From the IMG/VR virus record IMGVR_UViG_3300020202_000001, positions 124,001 through 188,000 of that record: DNA of 64,000 nt, one strand, 5' to 3'. The position numbers were made by a program, and so were the translations under genes. Positions 6,111 to 61,647 of this stretch are shown piece after piece. Below the pieces are notes generated by a model, which did no database searches, had not been told where the DNA came from, and saw only the letters and a list, made by a program, of their open reading frames with translations. Positions within the stretch are counted from its first letter, which is position 1. Every line of letters starts with the position of its first letter.

Positions 6111-6150
6111 GAAAGAGGCCCCGGCGTCGGTGCCGGGGCCTCTCGCTTTC
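6111..6150. terminator. hairpin between convergent genes (probable bidirectional terminator)
   Basis: AGAGGCCCCGGC-GTCGGT-GCCGGGGCCTCT. Confidence 0.7.
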
Positions 6151-6167
6151 AAAAACCGGTTTTGAGA
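6148..6167 (+). repeat. dispersed 20-bp quasi-palindrome, copy 1 (TTCAAAAACCGGTTTTGAGA)
   Basis: Read directly; lies between convergent stop codons. Confidence 0.95.
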
Positions 6168-7340
6168 TCAGTAGCCCATCGCGATCGGTTCGAGGGCGGC
6201 CGCGCCGCGGAGCCCGTACCGGTCGCCGGCGGTCTTGTTGTGGATCGGCGGCACGCCGGCCTCGGTCAGCAGCTGCTCGAACAGGGCGGCGTCGTCGCGG
6301 GGCATCGTCTCGGCCAGCTCGGCCAGCTTCTCGACGTCGACCTCCAGCCCGGCCTGGACCTCCTTGGCGAAGTCGGCACCCATCAGGGCGGCGATGTCGT
6401 CGAGGGCGATCTTCTTGAACGCCTGGCGGTCGTACACCTTGCCGGTGCTCAGGGCACAGGCGGAGCCGATGCCCGCCGTGGCCTCCTTGTACGTGACCCG
6501 GAAGATCACGTCCTCGGGCCGCTGGATCGTGTCCGTGTACCGGCCGACGAGGTTCAGCGTGCGGTCGACGTCGTCCATCACCTCGGCCAGCTTCACGAGC
6601 TGGGCGGGCTGCAGCGCGAACCGGGGCGACTGCTGGATCGTGTTAGCGAGGGAGATGATCTGGTCCCGCTGGGCGGCGGCCTTCGTGAGGTGGGCTCGCT
6701 GGCGGATCATCGCCACGACCTCCTTCGGCTCGCAGACGCCCTGCCCGGCCTGCCGCTCGACGAACAGCTCCAGGTCGGTGCCGAGCCCGACGCCGAAGTG
6801 GGCCGCCTTCTCCAGGATCTTCCCGGCGATGACGTTCCGGTCGGCGTACGGCATCGTGTCCCGGTACTCCAGCAGCCACTCGGCGGCGGCCTTGGTCTCG
6901 GCGGCGGACTTCATGCGGCAGAACCGCTGCTTGGTTCCGTCCTCGCCGACCCAGACGTAGCCGAAGTCGGAGTCCGGCAGGCGGTCCTCCGCGTTCTTGT
7001 ACAGCTCGTCGTACCGGGCGTCGATCGCGTCGACCGCGGCCTTCAGGCCCCAGTAGTTCACCAGCCCGTCGAGCCGCTGCTTGACCTTGGCGGCGATCTT
7101 CGGGTGGTACTCCGCCGACTTCTCCTTGAAGTAAAGGGCGGAGAACCAGGTGGACGCGGCGTTGTGACACGGGTACAACTTGTTCACCGGGTCGGCGTAC
7201 GCGCTCGGCGCAACCCCTTCCGGGAAAAGGTCATCGGCCGAAGCCTGCTTGGCGAAGTCAGGGAAGGCGTAAAGCAGCGACAGGCGGTTGAGTTCCGCCC
7301 CGTTGGTGTCGCTGGCGAGATCAAGGATGGTCTCCGACAT
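6168..7340 (-). CDS. probable virion/head-associated protein with two A.P..K.YP-type repeats
   Basis: RBS AGGAG before ATG 7340; motifs AYADPVNKLYPCHNAASTWFSALYF and DSDFGYV..RFCRMKSAAETKAAAEWL; many K-x-A motifs; same strand as terminase. Confidence 0.55.
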   Translation of the reverse strand: MSETILDLASDTNGAELNRLSLLYAFPDFAKQASADDLFPEGVAPSAYADPVNKLYPCHNAASTWFSALYFKEKSAEYHPKIAAKVKQRLDGLVNYWGLKAAVDAIDARYDELYKNAEDRLPDSDFGYVWVGEDGTKQRFCRMKSAAETKAAAEWLLEYRDTMPYADRNVIAGKILEKAAHFGVGLGTDLELFVERQAGQGVCEPKEVVAMIRQRAHLTKAAAQRDQIISLANTIQQSPRFALQPAQLVKLAEVMDDVDRTLNLVGRYTDTIQRPEDVIFRVTYKEATAGIGSACALSTGKVYDRQAFKKIALDDIAALMGADFAKEVQAGLEVDVEKLAELAETMPRDDAALFEQLLTEAGVPPIHNKTAGDRYGLRGAAALEPIAMGY

Positions 7341-9021
7341 GAGTGCTCCTCGTACCAGTTTGAACGTCCGTGTCCCTTGGGACGGGGTCTGTGCGGCGCT
7401 GGGGGTTCCGTTCCCCGGCATGGCCCTACCGCTCCGAACGACGTGCCCGCTCTGCGGCCGGCACGCCCTCGACCTGTTCAATGATAACATCTCGGGGGGT
7501 CAGTGGCACCACTGCGCCGAGTGCCGGTCCGCCGGGGACATGATCGAGCTGGCGTCGGCGAGCTGGGGGTGCGAGCCGGGGACCGCCCTGGCGAGGCTCT
7601 CCGAGGCCGGCGTGCAGCTCCCGCCCGAGTGCGGCGACCCGGCCGAGGTGTCCGCGTACGTCGACCGCTACCCCGCCTACCGCCGCCGGATGGCCGACCT
7701 CTGGGCCGCCGCCAAGGCGAACCTCCCGCAGAGCCGCTCCTCCGACGTCGGCAAGATCCGAACCCGCCACAACCTGAAGCTCGACGTGAGCCTGCAGCGG
7801 TGGCGGGCCGGGCCGGGCCACCTCGTCGGGTCGATCGGGTGGCGGGACGTCGAGGTCGCGTTCAACCCGTCCTCGGCCACGTCCAGCAGCGGGATGAGCA
7901 GCTACCGCGTGTTCAAGGGCAAGCACTGGGGCGAGGTGCTGACCGTCCCGTTCTACGACCTACCCGACCGCATCCGGGCGTTCATGTTCCTCGGCCGCGA
8001 GGGCCGCCCGCACCTCGACCAGGTGTTCCGCCGGCTGACGCTCGGGCAAGGGCGGGCCGACTGGTCCGAGGCGGGGCTCGCCGGGATCGAGTCCGTGGCC
8101 CTCGCCGGCGACCCGGCCAGCGTGATCGCCACCGACGACTACCTCCTCAACCTCCAGGTCCAGTTCCGCAACTTCCGCAGCTCGATGCGGTCGATCCCGA
8201 TGGTCGTGTGGCGGGACGACGGGGAGTGCCGCACCCGCACCGCCTGGTCGATCCTTGGCGGCAAGCGGGTCGTGTTCTGGGCGAGGGAAATAGACCACCG
8301 CGTCGTCATGCAGGCCGTCGAGACGGACGGCCGCATCTCGACGGCCGGGCCGGCGACGCCGACCCGGGAGGCCATGCTCCACTACCTGCGGCTCCGGCCC
8401 GGCAACGACCTCGAACGCGTCGTCCTCAAGCACGCCAAGCCGTGGGCCGAGGCCCTGCGGGCGTGGATGGCCGAAGCGCCCGAGGGCAAGGTGCAGGACC
8501 TGACGCTGCGGCTGGAGCAGGCCGGGGCGGACGTGTCGTACATCTTCCGCCAGCTCGGCGGGGACTACCACACGACCCGCGTCTCCCCAATGCGGGGCGT
8601 GCAGCTGAACGACCAACAGGTCGTCGAGCAGCACGACCGCTGGTACCTCGAAGGCAGCCGCCGGCACGGCAAGGGCCGCCGGCAGGTGTCCAACGCGACG
8701 CTGCGGCTGACGCACGCGATCAAGGACCGGGAGACCGGGACGATGCACTACCGTGGGGTCATCCGGTACAAGGGTACCGAGATCCCGTTCATCGAGAAGC
8801 TGGACACGGTCCGGCGGAAGACGGCGGAGTGGATGGCGGCGAAGATGCTCGATGCCGAGGCGGGCGTGCTCGCCGTCGGCGCGATGCGTACGAACCTCCA
8901 CCAGATCGCCGTCCTGTTTCACGAGCCCGTCTTCGTCGTCGACGACCTCTACAAGTGGGTCGAGCGGCTGAAGGCCGGCGAACAAGACCCCGCTCCGGCG
9001 GGGCAGGAAGGTCAGAGATGA
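7339..9021 (+). CDS. primase-related protein with N-terminal zinc finger
   Basis: CPLC..QWHHCAEC..GDMIELA resembles the DnaG zinc-binding domain; TOPRIM acidic motifs appear degenerate. Confidence 0.6.
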   Translation: MSAPRTSLNVRVPWDGVCAALGVPFPGMALPLRTTCPLCGRHALDLFNDNISGGQWHHCAECRSAGDMIELASASWGCEPGTALARLSEAGVQLPPECGDPAEVSAYVDRYPAYRRRMADLWAAAKANLPQSRSSDVGKIRTRHNLKLDVSLQRWRAGPGHLVGSIGWRDVEVAFNPSSATSSSGMSSYRVFKGKHWGEVLTVPFYDLPDRIRAFMFLGREGRPHLDQVFRRLTLGQGRADWSEAGLAGIESVALAGDPASVIATDDYLLNLQVQFRNFRSSMRSIPMVVWRDDGECRTRTAWSILGGKRVVFWAREIDHRVVMQAVETDGRISTAGPATPTREAMLHYLRLRPGNDLERVVLKHAKPWAEALRAWMAEAPEGKVQDLTLRLEQAGADVSYIFRQLGGDYHTTRVSPMRGVQLNDQQVVEQHDRWYLEGSRRHGKGRRQVSNATLRLTHAIKDRETGTMHYRGVIRYKGTEIPFIEKLDTVRRKTAEWMAAKMLDAEAGVLAVGAMRTNLHQIAVLFHEPVFVVDDLYKWVERLKAGEQDPAPAGQEGQR

Positions 9022-9215
9022 AGGCGACCGAGATCCTGGACAAGATCCAGGCGGAAGTGGACGCGGCCCGCGAGGACGCAACGAAGTTCGACGGCGGCAC
9101 CAACGCCGCCGGGACGCGAGTGCGGAAGCGGCTGCAGAGCATCGCGGGTTGGGGCAAGGACGGCCGCAAGCGCATCAGCGAGACCGTCGCCGAGCGGAAG
9201 GAAGCGAAGAAGTAG
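9018..9215 (+). CDS. histone H1-like nucleoid protein (Hc1 family)
   Basis: DATKFDGGTNAAGTRVRKRLQ..KDGRK matches the Hc1 signature (KF..GN.AAGTR.RK); ATGA coupling. Confidence 0.75.
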   Translation: MKATEILDKIQAEVDAAREDATKFDGGTNAAGTRVRKRLQSIAGWGKDGRKRISETVAERKEAKK

Positions 9216-9251
9216 TTCGCGGCCGCGACGACATGGACATCCGCCAGGTAA

Positions 9252-10172: not shown

Positions 10173-10812
10173 CAACGACACGATCGACGACGCGTGGGCG
10201 ATCTACCGCAAGGGCGAGCGGCCCGACCGCCCGTGCGACGAGGACTGCGCGAGGCGGAAGGCCGGCTCGGACGCCGTCGCCTGCGACTGCTCGCGGGCAC
10301 AGGAGGAGGCGGACGACCTGGTGGGCGTGGTCGACACCGAGACGCTCGCCGACCGGTTCATCGCCGCGCTGGAGGCCAACGAGCCGCTGCTCGTGCGGAA
10401 CGAGGAGCTGGTGCGGGAGCTGGGCAACCTCGTGGGCGAGGTGCGGTCGATGGGGTGGACGGACCGCGAGACCGACATCGCCACGCAGCTCCTGCCGCGG
10501 GTCCTCGACGTGCTGAAGACCTTCTCCGGCGAGATCCAGATTATCACCCGCAACGACAACAACGGCGACGAGCCCGAGTTCCTGACCTTCGACAAGGAGA
10601 AGGCCAAGGCGAAGTACCTGGAACTCATCAAGGCCGAGGGCAAGCAGATCCCCGAGGGCCACCAGATCAACGAGGTCGTGACGACGCCGGCCGGCACGGT
10701 CGAGGGCCGGTACGCGGACGACATGGTCGTGCAGGTCGACGGCGTCTGGTACGGCAACACCGACGCCTACGGCGACACGATGATCCGGTGGTTCGCGGAC
10801 CGGCTCAGCTAG
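10126..10812 (+). CDS. hypothetical protein
   Basis: AAGGAG upstream of GTG; typical codon usage. Confidence 0.7.
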   Translation: MSYRKEQGRGHTAQANNDTIDDAWAIYRKGERPDRPCDEDCARRKAGSDAVACDCSRAQEEADDLVGVVDTETLADRFIAALEANEPLLVRNEELVRELGNLVGEVRSMGWTDRETDIATQLLPRVLDVLKTFSGEIQIITRNDNNGDEPEFLTFDKEKAKAKYLELIKAEGKQIPEGHQINEVVTTPAGTVEGRYADDMVVQVDGVWYGNTDAYGDTMIRWFADRLS

Positions 10813-12743
10813 AGCAGCTCCCGCATCACGTCCTTGTCCTCGGGGTGCATCGCGTTGAGGAGGTCGTACGGGACCGCCATCTTCGCGATCGCCGCCACGT
10901 TGGGCCACTTGTCCGTCATGTTCCACAACGCGCACGCCCCAACGTTCGTCGCCTGGGCGAAGTCGTCTCGCAGGTTCGGGTCGCGGATGATCGTGTACAC
11001 GTCCTTGCCGAGGCGGCTGTCGACCTTCTCGTCCACCAGGGCGAGGAAGTCGCGGATCAGGCCCTCGTCGTCGGCGTGGTGGTAGTCGTCCTGGAAGAAC
11101 CTGATCCACCCGTTCTTGATCTGGTTGCAGGTCAGCAGGAGCGAGCGGGTCTTGTCGACCTGGTAGTGCGACCGCGGCGAGTTCTTCGACCCGGGCTTGA
11201 ACTGCATGATCCGGCTCGTGGCCCCGACGCGGACGTAGGCGACGGGGAGCACGCGTTCGAGCGGGTAGCCGGCCTGGATGATGAACGTCTCGCGGAGCGA
11301 GCCGGCACCGGTGTAGTCGTGGGCGATGGCGTGGCACTTGAACTTGTACGCCAGCCCCACGGCGAGCTTGGCCTCCCGCTCGTGCTCGTGCGGGGTCAGC
11401 GAGCGGTAGGCGAAGATCACGTCGATCTTGCCGTCCACCCGCATGCCCATCACGGAGTAGACGGTGTAGCTCATCCCGTCCTGCCCGCCGCCGCCCCAGT
11501 CGCACGCCAGCACGCGGGCGACGTAGGCGGACGGGTCGAACGCCTCGACGGCCCGTGTCAGGTCGCGGGGCCACGGCAGCACGCACGCCCGCTCCAGGTC
11601 GGAGAGCGTGATGATGCGGGAGCCCGTGTCGGACGACTCGCCGAGCACCTCGTTGTAGTAGACGTGCTCGGGCGTGTTGCCTTGGCCCTCGCGCTTGCCG
11701 AGGAGCATCGACCACTTCTCACGCGACGCGTAGTGCATCGGCATGAGGATCTGGGGGACGTGGTAGCCGGCGAAGTCCCACCGCTTCTCCGGCCGGGCGT
11801 GCACCCACCGGCCGAACTGCGGGAAGACGCTCTTCGGCTGGTGGCACTTGCCGCACACGATCCCCGGCCGCTCGTAGCTGATGTCCTCGGAGTACGGCCC
11901 GATCATGTCGTCGAGGTCGTGCGTCCGGGCGGGCACGTTCCAGTGCCCGCACTTGAAGCACTTCATCACCCACTCGGCCTGGGAGCTGTCCTTCCACAGC
12001 TTCTGGATCGTGTTCTCAAGGGACTTTGGGGTGCCGGCGTACTCCTCGATCACGCCGTAGGGCGAGCCGGACATCGTCTCGCGGATGATCGGGATGTGGT
12101 CCTTGTCGAGGTCCTGCACCTCGTCGTAGGACACCTTGTTCGCCGAGATGCCGCGCGTCCGGTCGCAGTCCGTGAACGCGAAGCTGAAGATCATCTTCGA
12201 GCGGTTGTTGAACGTCCGCTGCAGCACCGAGTTCACGGTGTCGCTGCCGATGAACAACGCCTTCACGGGGCTGGTCTCGATGAACGGCCGGACGTAGTTC
12301 TGCGAGAACCGCCGGATCATCTCGTACAGCGGCGTGACGTACAGCGTCGAGAAGTACGGGATCGCGTTCGAGTGGACGATGCCGCGGGCCGCGAGGTTGG
12401 TGCTCTTGGCGACCTGGCGGCCGGTCTTGTACATGACCTTCCGCGGCATCCGCATGCGGTAGAAGGTCTCGAACGGGAAGTAGCCGGGCGACCGCTTGGC
12501 GTGCTTGCCCGGGCGGCGGTCGAGCGTGTACGGCTCGCCGTTCAGCGAGAGGAGGAGGGGGAGCAGGGCCTTGAAGCTGGCACCCTTGCCCTTGGCGAGG
12601 ATGTGCTGCGCTTCGAGCAGCCGCTTCGTGTCGTTGTCTTCAAAGCCCGAGAGGCGGACGCCTTCGAGGAGGCTCTTGTCGAACTGGGCTGTAACTTCGT
12701 CGGGATCGACGGTCCCGGCAGGAATCACAATGGAGGATGCCAT
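10809..12743 (-). CDS. terL: terminase large subunit (GpA-like ATPase plus RNase H-fold nuclease)
   Basis: Walker A KTGRQVAKST, Walker B SYDEVQD, GTPK coupling motif, EWVMKCFKCGHWN..CGKC zinc knuckle, YYNEVLG, nuclease LACDWGGG and C-terminal DDFAQA; start uncertain (12743-12815). Confidence 0.85.
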   Translation of the reverse strand: MASSIVIPAGTVDPDEVTAQFDKSLLEGVRLSGFEDNDTKRLLEAQHILAKGKGASFKALLPLLLSLNGEPYTLDRRPGKHAKRSPGYFPFETFYRMRMPRKVMYKTGRQVAKSTNLAARGIVHSNAIPYFSTLYVTPLYEMIRRFSQNYVRPFIETSPVKALFIGSDTVNSVLQRTFNNRSKMIFSFAFTDCDRTRGISANKVSYDEVQDLDKDHIPIIRETMSGSPYGVIEEYAGTPKSLENTIQKLWKDSSQAEWVMKCFKCGHWNVPARTHDLDDMIGPYSEDISYERPGIVCGKCHQPKSVFPQFGRWVHARPEKRWDFAGYHVPQILMPMHYASREKWSMLLGKREGQGNTPEHVYYNEVLGESSDTGSRIITLSDLERACVLPWPRDLTRAVEAFDPSAYVARVLACDWGGGGQDGMSYTVYSVMGMRVDGKIDVIFAYRSLTPHEHEREAKLAVGLAYKFKCHAIAHDYTGAGSLRETFIIQAGYPLERVLPVAYVRVGATSRIMQFKPGSKNSPRSHYQVDKTRSLLLTCNQIKNGWIRFFQDDYHHADDEGLIRDFLALVDEKVDSRLGKDVYTIIRDPNLRDDFAQATNVGACALWNMTDKWPNVAAIAKMAVPYDLLNAMHPEDKDVMRELL

Positions 12744-12757
12744 CCTTGGCTCACAAA

Positions 12758-12982
12758 ATGAGTTCACGTCGTGGCCGCGGGCTCCGCCCGCGCGCCGACC
12801 CGGACCAGGCCACACTGGACGAGGCCGAGCGCATGCTCGACGTCCTGGTGGATCAGTTCAAGCTGTTCCTCGCCTTCCTTGGGCGCGGGCTGCTTGAGCT
12901 GGTATGCTTGCCTTTCAAGCGGCCAGAGCCGCCAGTCGAGCAACCGCCACGGCGTAAGCCGCGAAAAACGAGGTCATCCTAA
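12758..12982 (+). CDS. small hypothetical protein
   Basis: Short ORF with hydrophobic core and basic tail; start uncertain (12737 or 12758). Confidence 0.4.
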   Translation: MSSRRGRGLRPRADPDQATLDEAERMLDVLVDQFKLFLAFLGRGLLELVCLPFKRPEPPVEQPPRRKPRKTRSS

Positions 12983-12998
12983 CAGGCGAGGGATACGC

Positions 12999-13250
12999 AT
13001 GCCAACCACGTCGCGAAGCGCGATCGAGTTCCTCCGCAGGCACGGGCTCCGACAGACGCCGCAGACCCCGCGGCCGATGTTCGACGCCGGTGCCCTGCTG
13101 ATCCACACGATCCCGCTCGACACGGACCAGCTCAACCCGGCCCTGCTGCTGGACGGGCTGGGCAGTCCGCCGCCGGACCGCGGCGTGACCGGGGCGTGGC
13201 CCCCGCCTCAGGAGGTAATCGAAGATGGGACGACAAGCGAGTCGCAGTAG
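12999..13250 (+). CDS. hypothetical protein
   Basis: GAGGGA RBS before ATG 12999. Confidence 0.55.
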   Translation: MPTTSRSAIEFLRRHGLRQTPQTPRPMFDAGALLIHTIPLDTDQLNPALLLDGLGSPPPDRGVTGAWPPPQEVIEDGTTSESQ

Positions 13251-13407
13251 TTCGCTTCTCGCAGTCCTGGGCATCCTGTGGGCGTGCGGCGTGCTCATCA
13301 CGCTGATCGGCGGGGTCTACATCCACTGGATCGTGATCCTCGCAGCCACCGTCGTCAACGTGAGGACGGCGGCCGCGATCGGCAGGCCGCCGAGCCGCCG
13401 CAGGTAG
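13225..13407 (+). CDS. small two-TM membrane protein
   Basis: AGGAGG RBS; two hydrophobic segments; basic C-terminus. Confidence 0.55.
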   Translation: MGRQASRSSSLLAVLGILWACGVLITLIGGVYIHWIVILAATVVNVRTAAAIGRPPSRRR

Positions 13408-13449
13408 CCCGGGTGCCGCGTCGCACCCATTCGTCAACCGGAGTCGCGC

Positions 13450-13863
13450 GTGTTCAACCTGATCGTAGCAGCCTTGGCCGTGTGGCAGGCAATCAACATC
13501 TGGCACCACTCCTCCCTCTTCAGCTCGAAGCGGGCGTACGTGGAGTGCTGGGACGACTGGCGGAAGGACTTGCTCCGCTGCCCGTTCTGTCTCAGCCCGT
13601 GGGTGGCCGTCGCTATGGTCCTGTGGCTGGGCCTCGTCGACCACCTGATCGTCCCCAGGCTGCCGGTGCTCGGGCTCGTGCTCGACGCCCCGATCCACGC
13701 CCTGGCCGTCTCCCGCGTTGCGAACGTGCTCCACGACCTGATGAAGAAGCTCGACCAGACGCCCAAAGCGAATAAGCTAGGCGTCCCGGTCACGGGCGAC
13801 CATCAGGCCGAAGAGCCGTCCGGGGCGGAGCAAGCAGACGCAGGGCCGCAACAGGCAGAGTGA
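13450..13863 (+). CDS. DUF1360-like membrane protein
   Basis: LLRCPFCLSPWVA motif between hydrophobic helices; GGAG RBS. Confidence 0.65.
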   Translation: MFNLIVAALAVWQAINIWHHSSLFSSKRAYVECWDDWRKDLLRCPFCLSPWVAVAMVLWLGLVDHLIVPRLPVLGLVLDAPIHALAVSRVANVLHDLMKKLDQTPKANKLGVPVTGDHQAEEPSGAEQADAGPQQAE

Positions 13864-13864
13864 A

Positions 13865-13884
13865 TCTCAAAACCGGTTTTTGAA
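13865..13884 (-). repeat. dispersed 20-bp quasi-palindrome, copy 2 (TCTCAAAACCGGTTTTTGAA, reverse orientation)
   Basis: Exact reverse complement of copy 1; abuts ATG 13885. Confidence 0.95.
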
Positions 13885-20643: not shown

Positions 20644-20692
20644 TCCCCCGACCGGGGGTGTGATAGGATGTGTCCCTTTCCGGGCACCGACA

Positions 20693-20712
20693 TTCAAAAA
20701 CCGGTTTTGAGA
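20693..20712 (+). repeat. dispersed 20-bp quasi-palindrome, copy 3 (TTCAAAAACCGGTTTTGAGA)
   Basis: Identical to copy 1; abuts the AAGGAG RBS of the next gene. Confidence 0.95.
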
Positions 20713-21751: not shown

Positions 21752-21753
21752 CC

Positions 21754-24883: not shown

Positions 24884-24903
24884 TCTCAAAACCGGTTTTT
24901 GAA
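24884..24903 (-). repeat. dispersed 20-bp quasi-palindrome, copy 4 (TCTCAAAACCGGTTTTTGAA)
   Basis: Identical to copy 2; last A is the A of ATG 24903. Confidence 0.95.
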
Positions 24904-30920: not shown

Positions 30921-31401
30921 GCAACACGAGACCCCCTGCGCGGCCTGCCCGTTCTCCAAGACGTGCAAGCCGTACGCCGACGACCGGGCGGCGCTGGGCA
31001 ACAGCAGCCCGTTCGTCTACGTCGGCCAGGCCAACGGCAGCTTCACCCTGCCGTGCCACTCGACCCACGACTACACCCAGCTGGAGGAGCGGCTCGCGGC
31101 CGCCCAGCCGGGCAGCGGGTGCGAGTGCGCCGGCGCGGCGATCTTCCGGGCCAACATCGGCCTGCGGTACGCCGAGCGGCTGCTCCACCTGCCGGCCAAC
31201 CTCGGACCCGACTCGCCGGTGTTCGGCTCGTTCACCGAGTTCGTCGCCCACCACTACAAGATCCCGATCGACACGGCGAACATGATCGTCCACGATCTGC
31301 CGCCGGACCTGTTGACCGCGATCGAGGTGAGCAAGGTGCAGTTCAAGGCCCGGGTGCAGCCCGGGTCGGTCATCATCGCGGGTCAGCCGAAAGGCGGGTA
31401 G
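30892..31401 (+). CDS. Cys/His-rich protein (DUF6283-like)
   Basis: PCAACPF, LPCHS, ECAGA motifs. Confidence 0.6.
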   Translation: MSEANPPKRKQHETPCAACPFSKTCKPYADDRAALGNSSPFVYVGQANGSFTLPCHSTHDYTQLEERLAAAQPGSGCECAGAAIFRANIGLRYAERLLHLPANLGPDSPVFGSFTEFVAHHYKIPIDTANMIVHDLPPDLLTAIEVSKVQFKARVQPGSVIIAGQPKGG

Positions 31402-31409
31402 ACTGGAGA

Positions 31410-31429
31410 TGCAAAAACCAGTTTTGAGA
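31410..31429 (+). repeat. dispersed 20-bp quasi-palindrome, copy 5 (TGCAAAAACCAGTTTTGAGA)
   Basis: Two differences from copy 1. Confidence 0.9.
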
Positions 31430-35148: not shown

Positions 35149-35168
35149 CCTCAAAACCGGTTTTGAGA
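35149..35168. repeat. dispersed 20-bp site, copy 6 (contains perfect 18-bp palindrome CTCAAAACCGGTTTTGAG)
   Basis: Read directly. Confidence 0.95.
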
Positions 35169-37075: not shown

Positions 37076-39247
37076 ATGTGGATCAAGCGAGCGCTCTTCA
37101 GGAACATCGGCCGCCACCGCGAGCTGGACATCTACTTCCAGCGCGGGCTGGTGGGGATCTTCGGCCCGAACGGGTGGGGCAAGTCCACGATCGTCGACGG
37201 GATCTACGCCTGCCTGACGAACGACTGGAGCCGGTTCGCCGGCGTGAAACTCGACAACATCCGCGACACGGCCGACCCCGATGAGGAGTCGAGCATCACG
37301 GTCTGGGGCGAGCACGGGGACGTGCCGTTCGAGGTGTTCCGCCGCCTCCGCCGGGCCGAGAGCGAGAAGCGGAAGAAGGGCCTCCGCAAGGACAACGAGC
37401 TGATCGTCGACGGTAAGACGTTCGACAAGGACGAGGACATCAGGCGTGAGCTGACGGTACGCCTCGGCGTCAACCACAAGCTGATCGGCACGCACGTCTT
37501 CGTGGCCCAGCGGGAGATGTTCCGGTTCGTCTCCGACACCCCGGGCGACCGGGCGGCGACGTTCCAGATGCTCTGCGGGACCGAGAAGGCCAAGCAGATC
37601 GTCGACGCGATCGAGGCCCTGCTGGAGCAGGACAAGGAGCTGCTGGTCGTCGTCGACGACAACAGCGACGAGATCAACGCCCGCATCGGCGGCCGGGCGG
37701 TCGAGCTGCAGGCGGCCAAGGAGGAGCTGGCGGCCGCCACGGCGCTGCTGCTGCCCAAGAAGCGGCGGCTACTTTCAAAAACCGTTATTGAGAAGCGGCA
37801 GGCCTGGCGGCGGGCGGTCAAGGCGATCACGGCCCTGAAGCCGACGATCGTCGCGAGGAAGAAGGAGGTGTCGTCGGCGGAGCTGAAGTACACGGTGACG
37901 TCCACGGAGCTGAACGCCCTCGCCGCCGCCTTCAAGCGGGACAAGCCGCTGGCAGAGGAGGCTCGGGCCACGCTGAAGCGGATCACCGAGTACAACGAGC
38001 GACAGGAGGTGCAGGGCAACATCGAGCGGCGGCTGGCCGACGCCCGGACGAAGGTGAAGGAGCTGGGCGACCGCCCGCCCCTCCACGCGTCGGACGACAA
38101 CCGCGAGCGCCTCGTCGAGGAGCGGGGCACGCTGCGGGTGGAGTACCGGGAGAACAAGACGCTCCTGACCACGTTCGCGATCGAGGGCGTGGTGAAGTGC
38201 CCGACGTGCGGCACGAGCGTCCGGGACCTCGACGAGCACCTGCGGCTCGTGAAGGTCAAGCAGCCCAGGCTCAAGGCGCGGGGGCTGAAGCTCGCCAACT
38301 TGATCGAGGCGATCGACGCGGCCCGCGCGGCCCGGGAGGCGTACGACAAGGAGCGGCGGAAGGCGGACGCGAAGGTCTCGGAGTACGAGGCCCTGCTGAA
38401 GCACGCCAAGGTGAGCGATCCGCCGAAGGGCGACGCCAAGGCTCTGCAGCGGGTGGTCGACGACTTCGATGCGTTGGAGAAGAAGTACGACAAGGCCCGG
38501 CAGGTGAACGGCGATGCCGTCACCGCCGTGTCCACGGCCAAGGCCCGGCACGACGCCGTGGTCCAGCAGCGGGCGGACCTCCGGGTCGAGCGCGACGGCA
38601 ACGTCGTGACCGACGAGGAGCTGGAGCGTGCCAAGAAGCGGATGGCCCGCCACGAGGCGGCCAAGGTCAACGTCGCCGCCCTCAAGCAGAAGGTCGAGGG
38701 GATCGAGGCGGCCCAGGCCCAGGACGTCGAGGAGCTGGAGCGGCTCAAGGCGAAGCTGGCCAAGAACAAGAAGGCCCACCAGTTCGCGGCGAAGCTCAAG
38801 AAGATCGCCGAGGTCATGCACCGGCAGGCCCTGCCGCAGATGGTGGCCCAGTCGAACCTCCAGGACATGGAGGGCGACATCAACAAGATCCTCGACATGT
38901 TCGGCAGCCCGTTCTGGGTCGAGACGGCGGAGGACCTGACCTTCACCGTCCACTTCCCGGGCGAGCCGCCGCGCAACGCCCAGCGGCTCAGCGTCGGGCA
39001 GAAGGGCGTGCTCGCGATGGCGTTCCGCCCCGCGATCTCCGCCCTGTTCGACGCCGAGATCGGCATGATGACGCTGGACGAGCCGACCGCCGACATGGAC
39101 GAGCGGAACCGCGGGTTCATGGCCGCGGCGCTGGCCCAGTACGCGGCCCAGGTCCGGGGCCGCCGGCAGGTGATCGTCATCACCCACGCGAACGAGCTGC
39201 GGCAGTCGTTCGACCAGGTTGTGGAGCTAGGTGCACATGGCAACTGA
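37076..39247 (+). CDS. sbcC: SbcC/Rad50-like SMC ATPase
   Basis: Walker A GPNGWGKST, Q-loop FVAQ, zinc hook CPTC between coiled coils, signature LSVGQK, Walker B TLDEPT, H-loop VITH. Confidence 0.92.
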   Translation: MWIKRALFRNIGRHRELDIYFQRGLVGIFGPNGWGKSTIVDGIYACLTNDWSRFAGVKLDNIRDTADPDEESSITVWGEHGDVPFEVFRRLRRAESEKRKKGLRKDNELIVDGKTFDKDEDIRRELTVRLGVNHKLIGTHVFVAQREMFRFVSDTPGDRAATFQMLCGTEKAKQIVDAIEALLEQDKELLVVVDDNSDEINARIGGRAVELQAAKEELAAATALLLPKKRRLLSKTVIEKRQAWRRAVKAITALKPTIVARKKEVSSAELKYTVTSTELNALAAAFKRDKPLAEEARATLKRITEYNERQEVQGNIERRLADARTKVKELGDRPPLHASDDNRERLVEERGTLRVEYRENKTLLTTFAIEGVVKCPTCGTSVRDLDEHLRLVKVKQPRLKARGLKLANLIEAIDAARAAREAYDKERRKADAKVSEYEALLKHAKVSDPPKGDAKALQRVVDDFDALEKKYDKARQVNGDAVTAVSTAKARHDAVVQQRADLRVERDGNVVTDEELERAKKRMARHEAAKVNVAALKQKVEGIEAAQAQDVEELERLKAKLAKNKKAHQFAAKLKKIAEVMHRQALPQMVAQSNLQDMEGDINKILDMFGSPFWVETAEDLTFTVHFPGEPPRNAQRLSVGQKGVLAMAFRPAISALFDAEIGMMTLDEPTADMDERNRGFMAAALAQYAAQVRGRRQVIVITHANELRQSFDQVVELGAHGN
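37774..37793 (+). repeat. dispersed 20-bp site, copy 7, intragenic (TTCAAAAACCGTTATTGAGA)
   Basis: 18/20 match to copy 1 inside the sbcC coiled coil; run of rare A/T-ending codons. Confidence 0.8.
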
Positions 39248-46510: not shown

Positions 46511-46673
46511 GGCCCGGCGACAGTGGATGCGGCACTTCCGCCGGGTCTACCTCGACCGGACGGGCCTGCACTACATCGGCCCGATCACCGAGCTGCAGAT
46601 GTTCCTCAACTGCAACTACCTGCCGGAGACGGCGGTCTACCAGCTGACCGGGGTCGGCGGGGCCTGGATCTAA
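46464..46673 (+). CDS. small hypothetical protein
   Basis: Typical codons in 3' part; TAA lies within repeat copy 8. Confidence 0.5.
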   Translation: MTTVTCHPLSNYAAREARRQWMRHFRRVYLDRTGLHYIGPITELQMFLNCNYLPETAVYQLTGVGGAWI

Positions 46674-46688
46674 AAACCGGTTTTGAGA
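46669..46688 (+). repeat. dispersed 20-bp site, copy 8 (TCTAAAAACCGGTTTTGAGA)
   Basis: 12 nt upstream of the polymerase ATG. Confidence 0.95.
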
Positions 46689-53266: not shown

Positions 53267-54802
53267 ATGCCGAAACAGGAACGCAAGGCACGGAAGCCGG
53301 TCCCCGTCGCGAAGCGACAGCCCCGCGACGAGGACGACGGCGAGGAGACGAAGGCCGCGAAGCCGGCCGCCAAGCCGGCAGCCTCGGAGAAGGCCACCGG
53401 GTCCGCCCCCGGCACGCTCAAGCGCCGCTTGAAGCCCCGGGAGGACCCCACCGGCGCGAGCACCGGTCCGAACGACCGTGTTCACGCCCCGCGGCCCGTC
53501 CACAGCCTCGACAACCGGGACCTCTCCAAGATCCCCAAGAAGGGCAAGCAGCGCCTCGCCGAGTGGCGGGGCCAGAACCACGGCAAGAAGCTCGACAAGT
53601 ACATGCAGGGCATGATGAGTGCCTCGCGTCGAAAGTTCGGCCACAACGCCGTGTTCGCGGGGCACACCGACGAGAACATGATCGTCGGCATCCCGTGCCC
53701 GCTCGCCTTCGAGTACCTGCTCTGCCAGGACGTCTTCCCCCTCGGCCTCATCTACCAGATCGTCGGTCTGGCGGGCTCGCTCAAGAGTTCGCTGATCTAC
53801 GAGATCATGCGCTGGTTCCGCAACGCCGGCGGCGGCTCGCACCTTGAGGAGGTGGAGACGAAGTTCTCCCCAGAACTCATGCGGTCGATCGTCGGGTACG
53901 CGGAGGACGAGACGAACGTCATCGTCGACCGGTGCGACTCGGTCGAGGACTGGCAGCGGAAACTGCTCTACAACATCGACCAGCAGAAGGAGCTGCTGAC
54001 CTGGGAGGACAAGGCCAACAAGATCCCGGGTCCGGGTCGAACGGTGCCCATCTGCTTCGCGGTCGACAGCGTCAGCGGCAAGCTGAGCATGGAGACGCAG
54101 GAGAAGGTCAACGACCAGGGCTTCCACGGCCGGTCGTTCCCGATCGAGGCGATGAGCATCACCGGGTTCATGAAGACCGTGCCCCAGATGATCGACGGGT
54201 GGCCGTTCGCGCTGGTGCTGAACAACCACCTGAAGATGGGCAAGGACGACCAGGGCCACGACGTCCGGCGGATCACCGGCGGCGCGGGCCTGAACTTCCA
54301 GGAGTCGTTCGAGCTGGAGACGAAGGTCCGCAAGTCGAAGATCGAGTGCTCCGAGTGGGAGGGCATCCAGATCGGCATCCGCTGCACGAAGAACTCGTTC
54401 GGCCCCACGCACCGCCGCATCGACGCACGCATGCTGTGGTGGGAGGAGATGAACGAGGAGACGGGCGACTACGACCAGATCACCCGCTGGGACTGGCACT
54501 GGTCCACCGTGCAGCTGCTGACCGGCGAGAACATGCTGAGCGCCATGATCCGGGCTCGGCTGAAGGAAGCCGGCGTCCACGTCGACGCGCCGAAGAAGGC
54601 CGACGTGGAGAACCTCGCGTGGAGCAAGAACCTCGGCATGAAGAAGGAAGACGCCGTGCCGTGGAGCGAACTCGGCGCGATGATCGCCAAGGACACCGTT
54701 CTGTTGAACACCATCAGGCAGTGCCTCGGCATCAAGCGCCGCCCGCTCCTGCAGGGCGACTACCTCCAGCAACTGGAAGGGCTGCGAGAGCAGCTCCCGT
54801 GA
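53267..54802 (+). CDS. recA: RecA/UvsX-like recombinase with basic N-terminal extension
   Basis: FPLGLIYQIVGLAGSLKSS (Walker A), EVETK, AVDSVS (Walker B), VLNNHLK, TGGAGLNF, CTKNSFGP. Confidence 0.85.
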   Translation: MPKQERKARKPVPVAKRQPRDEDDGEETKAAKPAAKPAASEKATGSAPGTLKRRLKPREDPTGASTGPNDRVHAPRPVHSLDNRDLSKIPKKGKQRLAEWRGQNHGKKLDKYMQGMMSASRRKFGHNAVFAGHTDENMIVGIPCPLAFEYLLCQDVFPLGLIYQIVGLAGSLKSSLIYEIMRWFRNAGGGSHLEEVETKFSPELMRSIVGYAEDETNVIVDRCDSVEDWQRKLLYNIDQQKELLTWEDKANKIPGPGRTVPICFAVDSVSGKLSMETQEKVNDQGFHGRSFPIEAMSITGFMKTVPQMIDGWPFALVLNNHLKMGKDDQGHDVRRITGGAGLNFQESFELETKVRKSKIECSEWEGIQIGIRCTKNSFGPTHRRIDARMLWWEEMNEETGDYDQITRWDWHWSTVQLLTGENMLSAMIRARLKEAGVHVDAPKKADVENLAWSKNLGMKKEDAVPWSELGAMIAKDTVLLNTIRQCLGIKRRPLLQGDYLQQLEGLREQLP

Positions 54803-54806
54803 CACG

Positions 54807-55220
54807 ATGACCCTTCCCGCAAAGCCCGCCTCGGCGGGCACCAGGACATCCACACTCCCCGAGCTGCCGGTCGTGCCGGCGGTTCGGGGAGAGGTGTTCC
54901 CGGACGGCTTCAAACCCCTCGACGACGTCATCACGCTCGAACGGACGATCACTGTCTCGAAACGGATCAAGGTCGTCGGTAAGCTGACCACGAAGGGCGG
55001 CAACGCGGCGATCAAGGTCGAGCCCTGGTCGACCGACCGGCACCGCCGGATCGCCGACGACGCCGTGCCGTTCGACGACCTCGACGCCACCGTGGTCGCG
55101 ATGAACTTCCTCAAGTCCTGGCTGAAGACGGAGGGCGAGCGGCTGGTGATCGCCGAGGCCCCCGCCGTGAAGGAACCGCCCGAGCGGCGGCCCGATGACG
55201 ACGATGACGACGGCGAATAA
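54807..55220 (+). CDS. hypothetical protein
   Basis: Typical codons. Confidence 0.65.
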   Translation: MTLPAKPASAGTRTSTLPELPVVPAVRGEVFPDGFKPLDDVITLERTITVSKRIKVVGKLTTKGGNAAIKVEPWSTDRHRRIADDAVPFDDLDATVVAMNFLKSWLKTEGERLVIAEAPAVKEPPERRPDDDDDDGE

Positions 55221-55896: not shown

Positions 55897-55916
55897 TCTC
55901 AAAACCGGTTTTTAGA
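55897..55916 (-). repeat. dispersed 20-bp site, copy 9 (TCTCAAAACCGGTTTTTAGA)
   Basis: Exact reverse complement of copy 8; 5 nt upstream of a -35 box. Confidence 0.95.
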
Positions 55917-56008: not shown

Positions 56009-56902
56009 ATGAGCAAGAACGAATCCACGCTTCTCCCCGAAGAGCAGAAGCGCGCGGCGATCTACGAAGAGATGTCCCCGGCCCTCAAGAAGGTCGCGGA
56101 CGACTTCCGCAAGAAGGAGGCCGTCGCCTCCAAGGGCAACCTCACCCTCCGCTACGACATGGGCGTGAAGGTGAAGCAGGTGATCGAGGAGGAGGCCGAG
56201 TACGGCGCGAACGCCGTCAAGCAGCTCGCCGCCTTCCTCGGCCGCTCGGAGACGGACCTGTACGACCTGCGGAACGTCGTGACCACCTACGACAAGGACG
56301 AGATCATCGCCCTGTCGGAGCGCGAGATGGCCAACGGCGGGCACATCACGATGGGCCACGTCATGGCCATCGTCCGCGTGAAGAAGCAGGCCGACCGGAA
56401 GAAGCTGTGGGACCGCGTGTTCGCCGAGTCCCTCACCGTGGGCCAGCTCGCCGGCGAGGTGTCGGCCGGGTACGAGAAGGCCAACAAGCGCTCGGGCGGC
56501 CGCAAGCCGTCCAAGCCGACGAGCCCCGTGGCGGGCATCGCCCAGATCGCGGAGCGGACGCAGGAGCTGAACAACCGCTTCGAGGGCTGGGACGAGACCG
56601 TGTTCACGGCCATCGCCGACCTCCCCCCGGACAAGATCGACAAGATCGTCCTGGAGAAGGCCGAGAAGGCCAGCGCGGAGCTGCACAAGCTGGAGGAGAA
56701 CCTCACCCAGTACGTCGGCAAGTACGACAAGGGCGTCGAGCACATCCGCAAGGTCGTGGCGGCGAAGGCGAAGGAAGAGGCCGACGCCAAGGCCGAGCAC
56801 AAGAAGGAAGAGAAGCAGCTCGAAGGCAAGGGCGCGAAGAAGGCAGTCGGCAAGAAGGCCGACGCGAAGGCCGGCAAGAGCCGCCGGCCCGCTGCCGCCT
56901 AA
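56009..56902 (+). CDS. ParB/DUF1016-N-like helix-turn-helix DNA-binding protein with coiled coil and Lys-rich tail
   Basis: RYDMG..V..EAEYGANAVKQLAAFLGRSETDLYDLR (HTH) then HITMGHVMAIV..RKKL..VFAESLTVGQL (ParB GH..L..LSVR.L-like); AAGGAG RBS. Confidence 0.6.
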   Translation: MSKNESTLLPEEQKRAAIYEEMSPALKKVADDFRKKEAVASKGNLTLRYDMGVKVKQVIEEEAEYGANAVKQLAAFLGRSETDLYDLRNVVTTYDKDEIIALSEREMANGGHITMGHVMAIVRVKKQADRKKLWDRVFAESLTVGQLAGEVSAGYEKANKRSGGRKPSKPTSPVAGIAQIAERTQELNNRFEGWDETVFTAIADLPPDKIDKIVLEKAEKASAELHKLEENLTQYVGKYDKGVEHIRKVVAAKAKEEADAKAEHKKEEKQLEGKGAKKAVGKKADAKAGKSRRPAAA

Positions 56903-61248: not shown

Positions 61249-61427
61249 CCTGTCCGTTCTGCCACCGCGACGTGCCGAAGGAGCAGCTGAAGTCGGGGCG
61301 GTGTCCGCACTGCGGCACGTCCGTCCCGACCGTGCACCTCCAGCGGCGGTGGCAGCCCGTGCCGATGATCGACCACAGCCAACGACGCGGCCGCGAGGGC
61401 CGCCTCAAGCGACGAAGGGACGACTGA
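61245..61427 (+). CDS. small zinc-ribbon protein
   Basis: CPFC..CPHC; ATGA coupling. Confidence 0.6.
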   Translation: MTCPFCHRDVPKEQLKSGRCPHCGTSVPTVHLQRRWQPVPMIDHSQRRGREGRLKRRRDD

Positions 61428-61428
61428 C

Positions 61429-61620
61429 GTGACGGAGCACCCCCAGCAAGGCCAGGACCGACTGGACGACATCCTGAACCACCTGGCCGAGCTGGGGGTG
61501 CCGCACGCGGCCATCCGCGTCACCCGCGACCCCGCGGGCGACCGCGTCGCCGTCGCCCCGCCCTACGACACGTCCGAGGTGAGGGTGTACCTCGCCTCCG
61601 CCTCGCAGCGGCCCAACTGA
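61429..61620 (+). CDS. small hypothetical protein
   Basis: AAGGA RBS. Confidence 0.5.
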   Translation: MTEHPQQGQDRLDDILNHLAELGVPHAAIRVTRDPAGDRVAVAPPYDTSEVRVYLASASQRPN

Positions 61621-61627
61621 GGGCCGA

Positions 61628-61647
61628 TCCAAAAACCGGTTTTGAGA
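61628..61647 (+). repeat. dispersed 20-bp site, copy 10 (TCCAAAAACCGGTTTTGAGA)
   Basis: Abuts the AAGGAG RBS of thyX. Confidence 0.95.

Follow-up and report, generated by a model that had tools for sequence, protein, structure and literature searches.

Short palindromic sequences repeated across a phage or plasmid genome have been described in several settings. Among the closest to the sites described here is the 17-bp dyad repeat of Cluster O mycobacteriophages (5'-TGTTCGGNNNCCGAACA), present in more than 30 copies per 70-kb genome, mostly between genes or at gene 5' ends, with some copies inside genes, without meaningful orientation relative to transcription, and alongside a handful of SigA-like promoters; its function is unknown (PMC4351075). 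The KorB-OB regulon of plasmid RK2 and the Noc-NBS system of Bacillus are examples in which palindromic sites, spread over a replicon at variable distance from promoters, are read by a ParB-type HTH domain, and KorB silences promoters from distal sites (PMC11790492). In Bacillus phage SPbeta, the repeated SPBRE element was predicted in silico in intergenic and promoter regions across a 134-kb genome, and was shown decades later by ChAP-seq and EMSA to be bound by the phage master regulator MrpR (PMC10516654). Mycobacteriophage Cluster A stoperators, and the conserved inverted repeats of Streptomyces phage phiC31, are repressor sites spread in many copies through short intergenic gaps, including places without promoters, and act as roadblocks to elongation. 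Finally, phage N15 carries palindromic sites (IR1-4) for the ParB-family protein SopB at several places in its genome, which serve as prophage centromeres (PMC7205306).

We examined a 64-kb stretch (hereafter the window) of the 224,418-bp contig of an uncultured jumbo phage (IMG/VR record IMGVR_UViG_3300020202_000001, contig positions 124001-188000; 68% GC, GC3 96%), in which a sequence-only reading had noted ten AT-rich 20-bp quasi-palindromes. The repeat is unrelated in sequence to that of Cluster O phages, the host and phage type differ (a 70-kb siphophage against a 224-kb jumbo phage), and the Cluster O density is higher, about 1 per 2 kb; we found no mention of even spacing, gap-filling intragenic copies, or a candidate binder in the parts of that report we consulted. 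Compared with KorB and Noc, the site is 20-24 bp rather than 13-16 bp, it has an A-tract followed by a T-tract rather than the TTTAGC-GCTAAA of OB, and the setting is a lytic-type jumbo phage and not a plasmid or chromosome. SPBRE has about 10 copies, all at promoters of a temperate phage, its binder has a tyrosine-recombinase fold, and no spacing regularity was mentioned in the parts of that study we consulted; it is nonetheless a precedent for the inference made here. Stoperators are 13-14 bp, asymmetric, oriented with transcription, and serve prophage immunity in temperate phages, whereas the sites here are quasi-palindromic, occur in both orientations, and are evenly spaced, and we saw no integrase or immunity repressor in the annotated parts of this genome. 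N15 has only four sites, which serve partition of a plasmid prophage by a full SopA/SopB system; no such system was found here.

Site copies and their contexts

A search of the window with the 17-mer core, allowing up to 3 mismatches, matched at ten places, exactly those of the sequence-only reading, whereas shuffled sequences gave 0.03 matches on average; the observation is thus confirmed, and it proves to be larger than first described. Spacing within the window runs from 2,625 to 9,228 bp, three copies are reversed, and, as had been claimed, one half (GGTTTTGAGA) is almost invariant while the other varies, at positions 2-4 (TCCA, TTCA, TCTA, TCTC). The varied contexts described earlier were likewise all verified. 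The features of the window are as follows:

6115..6142, no strand: GC-rich hairpin GAGGCCCCGGC-GTCGGT-GCCGGGGCCTC, 5 nt upstream of the 6148 copy, which looks like a bidirectional terminator (fold energy -34 kcal/mol for the 60 nt upstream)
6148..6167, + strand: site copy TTCAAAAACCGGTTTTGAGA (PWM 44.0 bits), between convergent gene ends (5113-6102 + and 6168-7187 -)
13865..13884, - strand: reversed site copy (41.2 bits); the upstream stop codon ends at 13863, and an ATG at 13885 abuts the site with no Shine-Dalgarno sequence
20664..20669, + strand: -10-like hexamer TAGGAT, preceded by TG, which would put the 20693 copy at about +15 to +35 of a transcript
20693..20712, + strand: site copy (44.7 bits), followed directly by AGGAG and an ATG at 20728
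24884..24903, - strand: reversed site copy (45.2 bits), the last base of which is the A of the ATG at 24903, with no Shine-Dalgarno sequence
31399..31404, + strand: -10-like hexamer TAGACT, ending 5 nt before the 31410 copy, such that the site would overlap the transcription start
31410..31429, + strand: site copy TGCAAAAACCAGTTTTGAGA (41.0 bits); a GTG at 31451 starts a PAPS-reductase-like gene
35149..35168, + strand: site copy CCTCAAAACCGGTTTTGAGA (37.5 bits), the most symmetric in the window, 72 nt upstream of the SbcD-like gene (35241-36434)
37774..37793, + strand: degenerate intragenic copy TTCAAAAACCGTTATTGAGA (35.9 bits) inside the SbcC-like gene (37076-39247), written in rare codons (joint synonymous probability 3e-10)
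46669..46688, + strand: site copy TCTAAAAACCGGTTTTGAGA (46.1 bits), 12 nt upstream of the DNA polymerase gene (46701-50174), with the TAA stop of the upstream gene inside the site
55897..55916, - strand: reversed site copy (46.1 bits), 5 nt upstream of a sigma-70-like promoter, at a position conserved in relatives L129 and L136
55922..55950, + strand: sigma-70-like promoter TAGACA-17-TAGACT, which would drive the candidate binder gene
56009..56902, + strand: candidate binder gene (product P0121, 297 aa), with a ParB/Noc-like HTH domain (DUF1016_N type), an invariant RSGGRKP motif, a long coiled coil, and a basic tail
61628..61647, + strand: site copy at the consensus, TCCAAAAACCGGTTTTGAGA (46.7 bits), abutting AGGAG and 10 nt upstream of the ThyX gene (61658-62731); relative L136 has a copy at the same position

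Alignment of the copies showed that the motif is really about 24 bp and about 45 bits, with conserved flanking positions (gW-TCCAAAAACCGGTTTTGAGA-Ws). A PWM scan of 98.8% of the contig identified 36 sites scoring 27-47 bits, with the next best score at 16. Of these, 29 are intergenic in an 89%-coding genome (P 1.3e-21), usually wedged between a stop codon and the next ribosome-binding site or start codon. Orientation is mixed (23:13, P 0.13 against 50:50), although 223 of 237 called genes are on one strand, as expected for a symmetric dimer site and not for a promoter, terminator, or RNA signal. No second element is conserved at a fixed offset on either side, whether sites are aligned in canonical or genome orientation.

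These observations bear on the possibility that the sites are self-contained promoters for the phage's own transcription machinery, with transcripts starting at the edge of the site and having very short or leaderless 5' ends. The phage encodes a bacterial-type RNA polymerase (fused beta-beta'N plus beta'C) and at least two sigma-like factors, and this is the only strongly conserved intergenic motif; 24 of 29 intergenic copies lie 0-37 nt upstream of a start codon, several abutting AGGAG or the ATG itself, the motif changes between relatives as phage-specific promoters do, and an AT-rich island in 68% GC DNA melts easily. However, exact reverse complements of the asymmetric consensus occur upstream of same-strand genes (13 of 36 are reversed), the element is quasi-palindromic whereas sigma-type and T7-type promoters are asymmetric, the 6148 copy has no gene start on either side, seven copies are inside genes, and separate sigma-70-like promoters sit beside several copies at variable offsets. 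We regard this explanation as unlikely, although the sites are not independent of promoters: 7 of the 15 intergenic sigma-70-like -10 hexamers lie within 75 bp of a site (P 1e-4), and most sites hug the 5' end of a gene. This enrichment, and the strong hairpins that lie just upstream of several sites, link the sites to transcription and count in favor of our main reading.

An RNA-level intercistronic element, in which the transcribed palindrome would fold into a short hairpin between cistrons and serve as a processing site, an mRNA-stabilizing (REP-like) 3' hairpin, or a translational operator next to the ribosome-binding site, is doubtful. The position between a stop codon and the SD or start codon must often be within polycistronic RNA, and the versions in relatives can form 7-10-bp stems (L129, -9.8 kcal/mol; L055, -6.3 kcal/mol), with the consensus here folding with one bulged base (-4.8 kcal/mol). 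However, the commonest window variant folds at only -2.3 kcal/mol and that of L034 at -0.1 kcal/mol, and the consensus keeps two systematic mismatches without compensatory changes. The two orientations also give different RNAs, with a bulged A on the 3' side or a bulged U on the 5' side, there is no U-run for termination, and the copy between convergent genes lies beyond a strong terminator hairpin.

Even spacing and the intragenic copies

The sites are spaced far more evenly along the genome than expected by chance, with a spacing CV of 0.376 against 0.97 for random placement, and none of 5,000 simulations were as regular; we are not aware of such spacing having been reported for comparable phage repeats. 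The minimum gap is 2.3 kb, and the gap across the contig ends (5.2 kb) fits the series. The seven intragenic copies fall in 7 of the 9 longest intergenic-only intervals, and lower the CV more than any of 20,000 random placements. They use codons of 1-3% usage in spite of the extreme GC3 bias (joint synonymous probability 1e-8 to 1e-11), showing selection at the DNA level.

One alternative that these data bring forward is a chromosome-organizing lattice without a direct role in transcription, in which the sites would be anchoring, bridging, or loading points for a phage nucleoid protein that needs one site every 10 kb or less, for example to form loops, compact the DNA, or tether it; the phage also encodes a tubulin. 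In this view the sites sit between genes only because that is where an AT-rich 24-mer can be tolerated. The even spacing, the maintained gap-filling copies, the random orientation, and the copy between convergent gene ends are in its favor, as are spacings of roughly 3-9 kb in the fragments of relatives and the predicted ParB/Noc-type DNA-binding fold of the candidate, as Noc and KorB use dispersed palindromes. In contrast, in wide gaps the sites favor the downstream gene start over the upstream stop (6 against 2), they are enriched next to sigma-70-like -10 hexamers, the candidate lacks the CTPase domain that lets ParB, Noc, and KorB spread or slide, and we identified no ParA or SMC-loading partner. 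This alternative is possible, but we consider it less likely than our main reading.

A nonfunctional or selfish repeat, such as the footprint or target of a mobile element or homing endonuclease, or a recombination linker at gene boundaries, seems improbable. Many copies are identical over 20 bp, with ten sharing the exact consensus and four TTC-type copies clustered at contig 130-149 kb, and the Cluster O repeats flank a gene insertion (PMC4351075). However, there is no similarity beyond 24 bp, we saw no transposase or RAYT-like gene, and even spacing and gap filling are not expected of selfish spread. The layout and some positions are also conserved across relatives with 41-70% protein identity while the center of the motif differs, which points to long-term selection with a coevolving reader.

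Variants in relatives and a candidate binder gene

Relatives (L055, L136, L129, and L034) carry cognate variants that keep the outer half-sites (TCTAAAA/TTTTAGA) and the stop–site–SD/ATG layout but have different centers (CCGG, CCGC, CTAG, GTAC). In all three genomes where it could be checked—this phage and two divergent relatives, L129 (41% identity) and L136 (54% identity)—a copy sits upstream of the P0121 gene or its homologue. An AlphaFold model of P0121 has a pLDDT of 80, and the top 29 Foldseek PDB hits are all ParB/Spo0J/Noc/SopB DNA-binding domains, with a TM-score of 0.68 to the Noc domain bound to its site (6y93_A), although the E-values are weak (8e-3 to 0.5). In Pfam, 46 of 60 homologues hit DUF1016_N and 11 of 60 hit HTH_ParB, but we found no N-terminal ParB CTPase domain in the candidate or in the 60 homologues, and no sliding-clamp mechanism can be assumed. 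The link between P0121 and the sites rests on gene-site adjacency in three genomes and on a predicted fold match. Moreover, more distant P0121 homologues (L131 and L132) have no AT-rich palindrome upstream, and another small DNA-binding protein, a stand-alone GerE/LuxR HTH encoded at contig 7193-7480, could be the binder instead.

The sequence-only reading had inferred a site for a dimeric protein, argued against simple promoters, and favored a chromosome-organizing, partitioning, or transcription-roadblock system; this interpretation is only partly supported. The argument against simple promoters holds and is now stronger, the inference of a dimeric protein is supported by the positionally conserved copy upstream of the ParB/Noc-like HTH protein gene, and the even spacing and gap-filling copies fit an organizing or roadblock role. 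Partitioning in the parS sense is unlikely, as no ParB CTPase domain was found in the candidate or in 60 homologues, no ParA family appeared in the Pfam-annotated parts of the genome, and nothing indicates a plasmid-prophage lifestyle.

A putative lattice of protein-binding sites

We favor the explanation, at about even odds (a probability of roughly 0.5), that the repeats are double-stranded DNA binding sites for a phage-encoded dimeric protein, most likely P0121, that would gate transcription units and/or organize the chromosome, and are not plain promoters, terminators, or RNA hairpins. Our analysis shows the copies, their placement, even spacing, and mixed orientation, DNA-level selection on the intragenic copies, evolution of the motif in relatives, and the predicted fold of the candidate; that a protein binds, which protein it is, and what binding does are inferences from sequence, and sequence alone cannot separate transcription gating from chromosome organization. 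Some observations sit poorly with this reading. About 20 of the 29 intergenic sites have no recognizable promoter nearby, such that a pure operator model does not explain them, and every site pairs one invariant half with one variant half, with no copy being the perfect GAGA-type palindrome, which a simple homodimer model does not predict. The tendency of sites in wide intergenic gaps to sit next to the downstream start codon also fits a 5'-end signal.

In the series of events we propose, the protein would be made from its own sigma-70-like promoter, where the adjacent site suggests autoregulation, and would then occupy about 36 sites spread evenly round the 224-kb genome. Most sites sit exactly at the junction between a stop codon and the next ribosome-binding site or start codon, and several sit at or just downstream of sigma-70-like promoters and terminator hairpins; bound protein would therefore act as an orientation-independent gate, occluding start sites or blocking read-through, and dividing the almost unidirectional genome into units of about 6 kb.

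Copy number, placement and spacing of the dispersed sites

A search of the window for the 17-base core with up to three mismatches returned matches at exactly the ten places listed by the sequence-only reading, whereas shuffled sequence gives 0.03. Its observation held, and every claim it made about the context of the copies was confirmed by reading the flanks:

Window 6148: a copy between the ends of two convergent genes, 5 nt after a GC-rich hairpin
Window 13865 and 24884: reversed copies that touch an ATG with no Shine-Dalgarno sequence
Window 20693 and 61628: copies that run straight into AGGAG
Window 55897: a copy 5 nt upstream of TAGACA-17-TAGACT
Window 37774: a degenerate copy inside an SbcC-like gene

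One half of the element (GGTTTTGAGA) is nearly invariant, and the other is TCCA, TTCA or TCTA followed by AAAACC. An alignment of the 25 copies then known shows that the conserved block is really about 24 bp, g-W-TCCAAAAACCGGTTTTGAGA-W-s, and that nothing is conserved beyond it. The open reading frame that starts at the ATG touching the 13865 copy (window 13885-14748, + strand) has a GC3 of only 0.82, against 0.96 genome-wide, and because it may shift into the 14264-15253 frame its gene model is uncertain.

The window is 68% G+C and contains no tRNA genes. It has no close relative among GenBank phages; a megablast search with 25 kb found nothing, and the best terminase match was 30% identical. 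The 224,418-bp contig of which it is positions 124001-188000, IMGVR_UViG_3300020202_000001, was assembled independently as a 224,432-bp ENA contig, and by walking along it we assembled all but 2.6 kb (contig 31614-32065 and 52852-55025 are missing) with no mismatches in the overlaps. Of 237 called genes, with starts taken from a GC3-based caller and the public calls, 223 are on one strand. GC3 is 96.4%, an extreme codon bias against which any AT-rich island stands out and intragenic copies of the motif are costly. The genome codes for a large terminase, helicases, SbcCD-like proteins, ThyX, NUDIX, ribonucleotide reductase and CsrA, together with the following:

Contig 21647-26152 and 28817-31573 (10925-15430 and 18095-20851 of contig segment L036): a bacterial-type RNA polymerase in two pieces, a fused beta-beta'N protein of 1501 aa with both Rpb2_6 (beta) and Rpb1_2 (beta') domains, and a beta'C piece of 918 aa; a fused beta-beta' differs from the split subunits of phiKZ-like jumbo phages
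Window 18-776 (+) and contig 71781-72539 (16756-17514 of segment L040): two sigma-like proteins, one with Sigma70_r2 plus r4_2 (ECF-like) and the other with r3 plus r4
Contig 204869-206140 (5060-6331 of segment L044): a tubulin/PhuZ-like gene with a site copy 18 nt upstream and a receiver-domain protein encoded next to it
Window 9018-9215 (+): a 65-aa histone H1-like Hc1 protein (Pfam E 2.8e-13); a relative (L035) has one in the same neighbourhood near the terminase gene
Contig 7193-7480 (209-496 of segment L012): a stand-alone 95-aa GerE/LuxR-type HTH protein
Window 46701-50174 (+): a family-A DNA polymerase with an N-terminal UDG-superfamily domain (1157 aa)
Window 6168-7187 and 10203-12728 (-): the terminase and two other genes, forming small minus-strand islands in an otherwise plus-strand genome, with the 6148 copy at the convergent junction

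A dCTP-deaminase-like protein, a PAPS-reductase-like protein and several glycosyltransferases are also encoded and, together with the polymerase, ThyX and NUDIX, suggest modified DNA bases. The Hc1 and CsrA genes hint at a non-actinobacterial host, possibly of the PVC group or Myxococcota. A local phmmer search for sigma paralogues was noisy and gave nothing. The phage belongs to a large uncultured clade, with 1386 terminase relatives at E values at or below 1e-20 and 483 IMG/VR loci carrying one.

A weight matrix built from the sites finds 36 copies scoring 27-47 bits in the assembled genome, and the next best position scores 16, although the second missing segment lies in the longest remaining gap between sites and could hide a degenerate copy. 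Twenty-nine copies are intergenic, although only about 11% of the genome is non-coding (P 1.3e-21); eleven touch the upstream stop codon within 0-2 nt, 24 lie 0-37 nt upstream of a start codon, and in wide gaps they tend to sit next to the downstream start. Orientation is 23:13, not different from a coin toss (P 0.13), and exact reverse complements of the asymmetric consensus lie upstream of same-strand genes, for example at contig 209765. A directional promoter, terminator or RNA signal should have one orientation, and this element does not; in particular, it lacks the constant orientation with the transcribed gene that is expected of T7-like or phiKZ/AR9-like phage-polymerase promoters, and we regard a self-contained promoter as unlikely.

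The spacing of the sites is far from random, with a mean of 6264 bp, a range of 2273-13391 bp and a CV of 0.376 against 0.97 for random placement, and none of 5000 simulations was as regular, whether positions were drawn uniformly or from the real intergenic gaps. The gap across the contig ends (5182 bp) fits the series. The seven intragenic copies lie in seven of the nine longest intergenic-only intervals, each of the six longest holding exactly one, and none of 20,000 random placements of seven extra points lowered the CV as much, although the maximum-gap statistic alone is weaker (P 0.09). These copies are spelled with codons used 1-3% of the time, giving joint synonymous probabilities of 1e-8 to 1e-11, and they are therefore kept at the DNA level. 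A selfish or neutral repeat, which we consider the least likely of the explanations, does not explain the even spacing, the gap filling, or the conserved layout across relatives whose motif centre differs.

Transcription signals and motif variants in relatives

A generic promoter and terminator scan gave counts at shuffle level, apart from the promoter beside the 55897 copy. K-mer enrichment in intergenic DNA found only Shine-Dalgarno sequences and hairpin pieces, with no second conserved motif, and no position outside the 24-mer is conserved at a fixed offset from the sites in either alignment frame. A small family of sigma-70-like -10 hexamers (TA[AG][AG]AT or TAGACT) occurs 15 times in intergenic DNA, and seven of these lie within 75 bp of a site, where 1.3 are expected (P 1e-4). 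In five of the seven the hexamer lies 4-31 nt upstream, so the site would cover the start point or the first 15-35 nt of the transcript; in the other two the site is upstream of the promoter. Seen from the sites, seven of the 36 lie within 75 bp of such a hexamer, at offsets from -31 to +54, and the others are far from any.

The 60 nt upstream of sites fold more stably than controls (Mann-Whitney P 0.002), and very strong hairpins lie before the copies at contig 28762, 209765, 130148 (window 6148) and 4059. A subset of sites therefore marks places where one transcription unit ends and another begins, although about twenty intergenic sites show no such signals. These GC-rich hairpins are separate from the element, whose own stem would be A-U pairs with no T-run following, unlike an intrinsic terminator. 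As an RNA hairpin the element is weak (-2.3 to -4.8 kcal/mol), and its two systematic mismatches are never compensated; although the intergenic position would also fit a REP/BIME-like palindrome, no RAYT-like family was seen. We rejected an RNA hairpin or terminator as the main reading on the basis of the weak folds, systematic mismatches and mixed orientation, and an RNA element remains very unlikely.

To look for the element elsewhere, we scanned 185,579 species genomes with a 17-mer, which gave at least 120 hits; those seen were only single, chance-like matches in unrelated, mostly AT-rich taxa, giving no support for a host regulon or prophage source. Other IMG/VR contigs with the 16-mer were likewise single hits only. 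Relatives, seen in fragments of about 21 kb as far as spacing is concerned, carry related motifs.

Motifs related to the dispersed site in relatives of the phage (relative; relationship; motif; placement)
L034; terminase 70% identical, 61% GC; yCTAAAAACCGTTTTCTAA; tiny gaps just before ATG codons, both orientations, 2.9-8.9 kb apart
L055; terminase 54%; CCTCAAAA(GCGG/CCGC)TTTTGAGA; three copies, each straight after a stop codon and just before AGGAA or ATG, 6.6 and 8.6 kb apart
L129; 202-kb contig, syntenic; perfect palindrome GACCTAAAAAGTACTTTTTAGGTC; plus two looser copies
L136; homologue of P0121 (the product of window gene 56009-56902) 54% identical; TCTAAAAACTAGCTTTTAGA and TCTAAAAGCCAGCTTTGAGA; upstream of the P0121 homologue and of ThyX
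L053; 46% GC; TATAAGTACTTATA; in front of ribosome-binding sites

Two patterns follow. The outer half-sites (TCTAAAA/TTTTAGA, or TCTCAAAA/TTTTGAGA) and the 20-bp length persist, while the central 4 bp change (CCGG, CCGC, CTAG, GTAC), which is how a site behaves when it co-evolves with a phage-encoded reader. Positions, however, are only partly conserved; the copy upstream of the homologue of window gene 56009-56902 is present in this phage, in L129 and in L136, whereas the copy upstream of ThyX is shared with L136 only. A search for the L129 motif across IMG/VR found only five loci on that 202-kb contig with the exact 16-mer, too few and too degenerate for a test of spacing in an independent genome.

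Other features of relatives were also seen. In L136 (15128-17014) the ThyX gene carries weak Pfam hits to intein-splicing, NUMOD4 and HNH domains between two Thy1 hits, suggesting an intein with a homing endonuclease, which the ThyX gene in the window does not carry. In L085 (relative IMGVR_UViG_3300027838_000002), arrays of a 37-bp-period repeat (TGGTACTCGC-N8-TGGTTGCACGC-N8) lie on both sides of the terminase gene (1357-1653 and 11890-13117), and in relatives L120, L122 and L123 (about 340-2400) a run of small paralogous genes all begin ATGATAAGAAAAA (MIRK...).

The candidate reader P0121 and its predicted fold

The candidate reader of the sites is P0121 (297 aa), whose gene has its own sigma-70-like promoter with a site 5 nt upstream. 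Pfam gives weak HTH_ParB and DUF1016_N hits, the HTH_ParB hit (E 4e-4) being below the curated cut-off. A sequence search of the PDB with P0121 gave nothing meaningful and a viral fold library returned only uncharacterised proteins. The ESM Atlas lists ParB proteins among the structural neighbours of P0121. An AlphaFold model from ten homologues (pLDDT 80) is all-helical and has no alpha/beta N-domain. Its top 29 Foldseek PDB matches are all ParB, Spo0J, Noc or SopB DNA-binding domains (probability about 1, E 8e-3 to 0.6, TMt up to 0.68, the TM of 0.68 being to the Noc domain bound to its site), consistent with a ParB-type HTH domain, although the match is weak. The family is large, with 2404 representatives; of 60 sampled members, 46 hit DUF1016_N, 11 hit HTH_ParB and none hits the ParB CTPase domain (ParBc/ParB_N). 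After the HTH region come an invariant RSGGRKP motif, a long coiled coil and a basic tail, a layout that fits a dimer on a palindrome, and we speculate that the Gly-Arg motif enters the A-tract minor groove.

P0121 is a good candidate but not a demonstrated one. The GerE-type HTH protein is an alternative reader, as proteins of this kind bind inverted repeats as dimers, and more distant P0121 homologues (L131-L135) have no clear AT-rich palindrome upstream, or only a weak one (TAAATT-N4-AATTTA).

Competing mechanisms and comparison with dispersed sites elsewhere

With the directional, RNA and selfish explanations disfavored, what remains is a protein-binding site on double-stranded DNA, inferred from sequence alone. 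The copies, their placement, even spacing and mixed orientation, the DNA-level selection on the intragenic copies, the changes of the motif in relatives and the candidate's modelled fold come directly from the analysis, whereas that a protein binds, which protein it is and what binding does are our inferences. Two readings of the purpose are both compatible with the data, a transcription gate (an operator or roadblock at unit boundaries) and a chromosome-organising lattice; the promoter association and the preference for gene 5′ ends favor the first, and the spacing statistics and the intragenic copies favor the second. One protein could do both, as KorB does on RK2 (PMC11790492). We give the binding-site/gate model a probability of about 0.5, and consider a purely organisational lattice possible but doubtful. 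The sequence-only interpretation, which favored a chromosome-organising, partitioning or transcription-roadblock system over simple promoters, is partly supported.

A true ParB/parS system was rejected. There is no CTPase domain in P0121 or in the 60 homologues, no ParA/CbiA family appears in the Pfam tables, which cover all but about 2.6 kb and some small genes, and the sites are 20-24 bp and spread evenly over 224 kb, in place of 16-bp sites clustered at one locus. The 36 dispersed palindromes at variable distance from promoters do resemble the sites of the ParB-family proteins KorB (PMC11790492) and Noc, as well as those of N15 SopB, but without a CTPase domain the CTP-dependent clamp that spreads or slides from KorB and Noc sites is not supported here. 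Stoperators of Cluster A mycobacteriophages are asymmetric 13-14-bp sites oriented with the direction of transcription, whereas these are 20-24-bp quasi-palindromes of which 13 of 36 are reversed relative to same-strand genes. Stoperators also belong to temperate phages with an immunity repressor and an integrase or partition functions. No integrase or repressor family appears in the Pfam tables obtained, in which many genes have no annotation, and the gene content (own RNA polymerase, tubulin, replication set) looks like that of a lytic jumbo phage.

The closest description is the 17-bp dyad repeat of Cluster O mycobacteriophages, with more than 30 copies between and within genes, no orientation bias and no known function (PMC4351075), a descriptive class, not a homology family, that the 36 copies and 23:13 orientation fit. 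The closest mechanistic precedents, besides the ParB-family palindromes, are SPBRE and MrpR of phage SPbeta, a repeat predicted in silico and later proven by ChAP-seq (PMC10516654). Dispersed operator-like repeats, including stoperators, SPBRE, the Cluster O repeats and KorB operators, are known in a few phages and plasmids, but even spacing with rare-codon gap-fillers was not mentioned in the descriptions of those systems that we consulted. Here the phage pays a visible price to keep the spacing, writing rare-codon copies inside genes exactly where the gaps would otherwise be longest.

More tentatively, the sites may form a spacing-constrained lattice in which the phage would need one high-affinity docking site for a CTPase-less ParB-HTH-like protein at least every 10 kb or so, and writes the site into coding sequence where no intergenic gap is available. 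That would be a dedicated chromosome-organisation or insulation system of a jumbo phage, dividing a 224-kb, almost unidirectional genome into units of about 6 kb, and such a system is not known to have been described for phages. The idea is open to experiment, as there is a short defined site, a specific candidate protein from a family of more than 2000 uncharacterised representatives, and natural variants of the motif in relatives to serve as specificity controls. The sites also mark likely transcription-unit boundaries in genomes where almost no gene has an annotation. If the lattice is real, a large clade of uncultured jumbo phages, whose members encode their own RNA polymerase, sigma-like factors and tubulin, has a genome-wide DNA-level organising principle.
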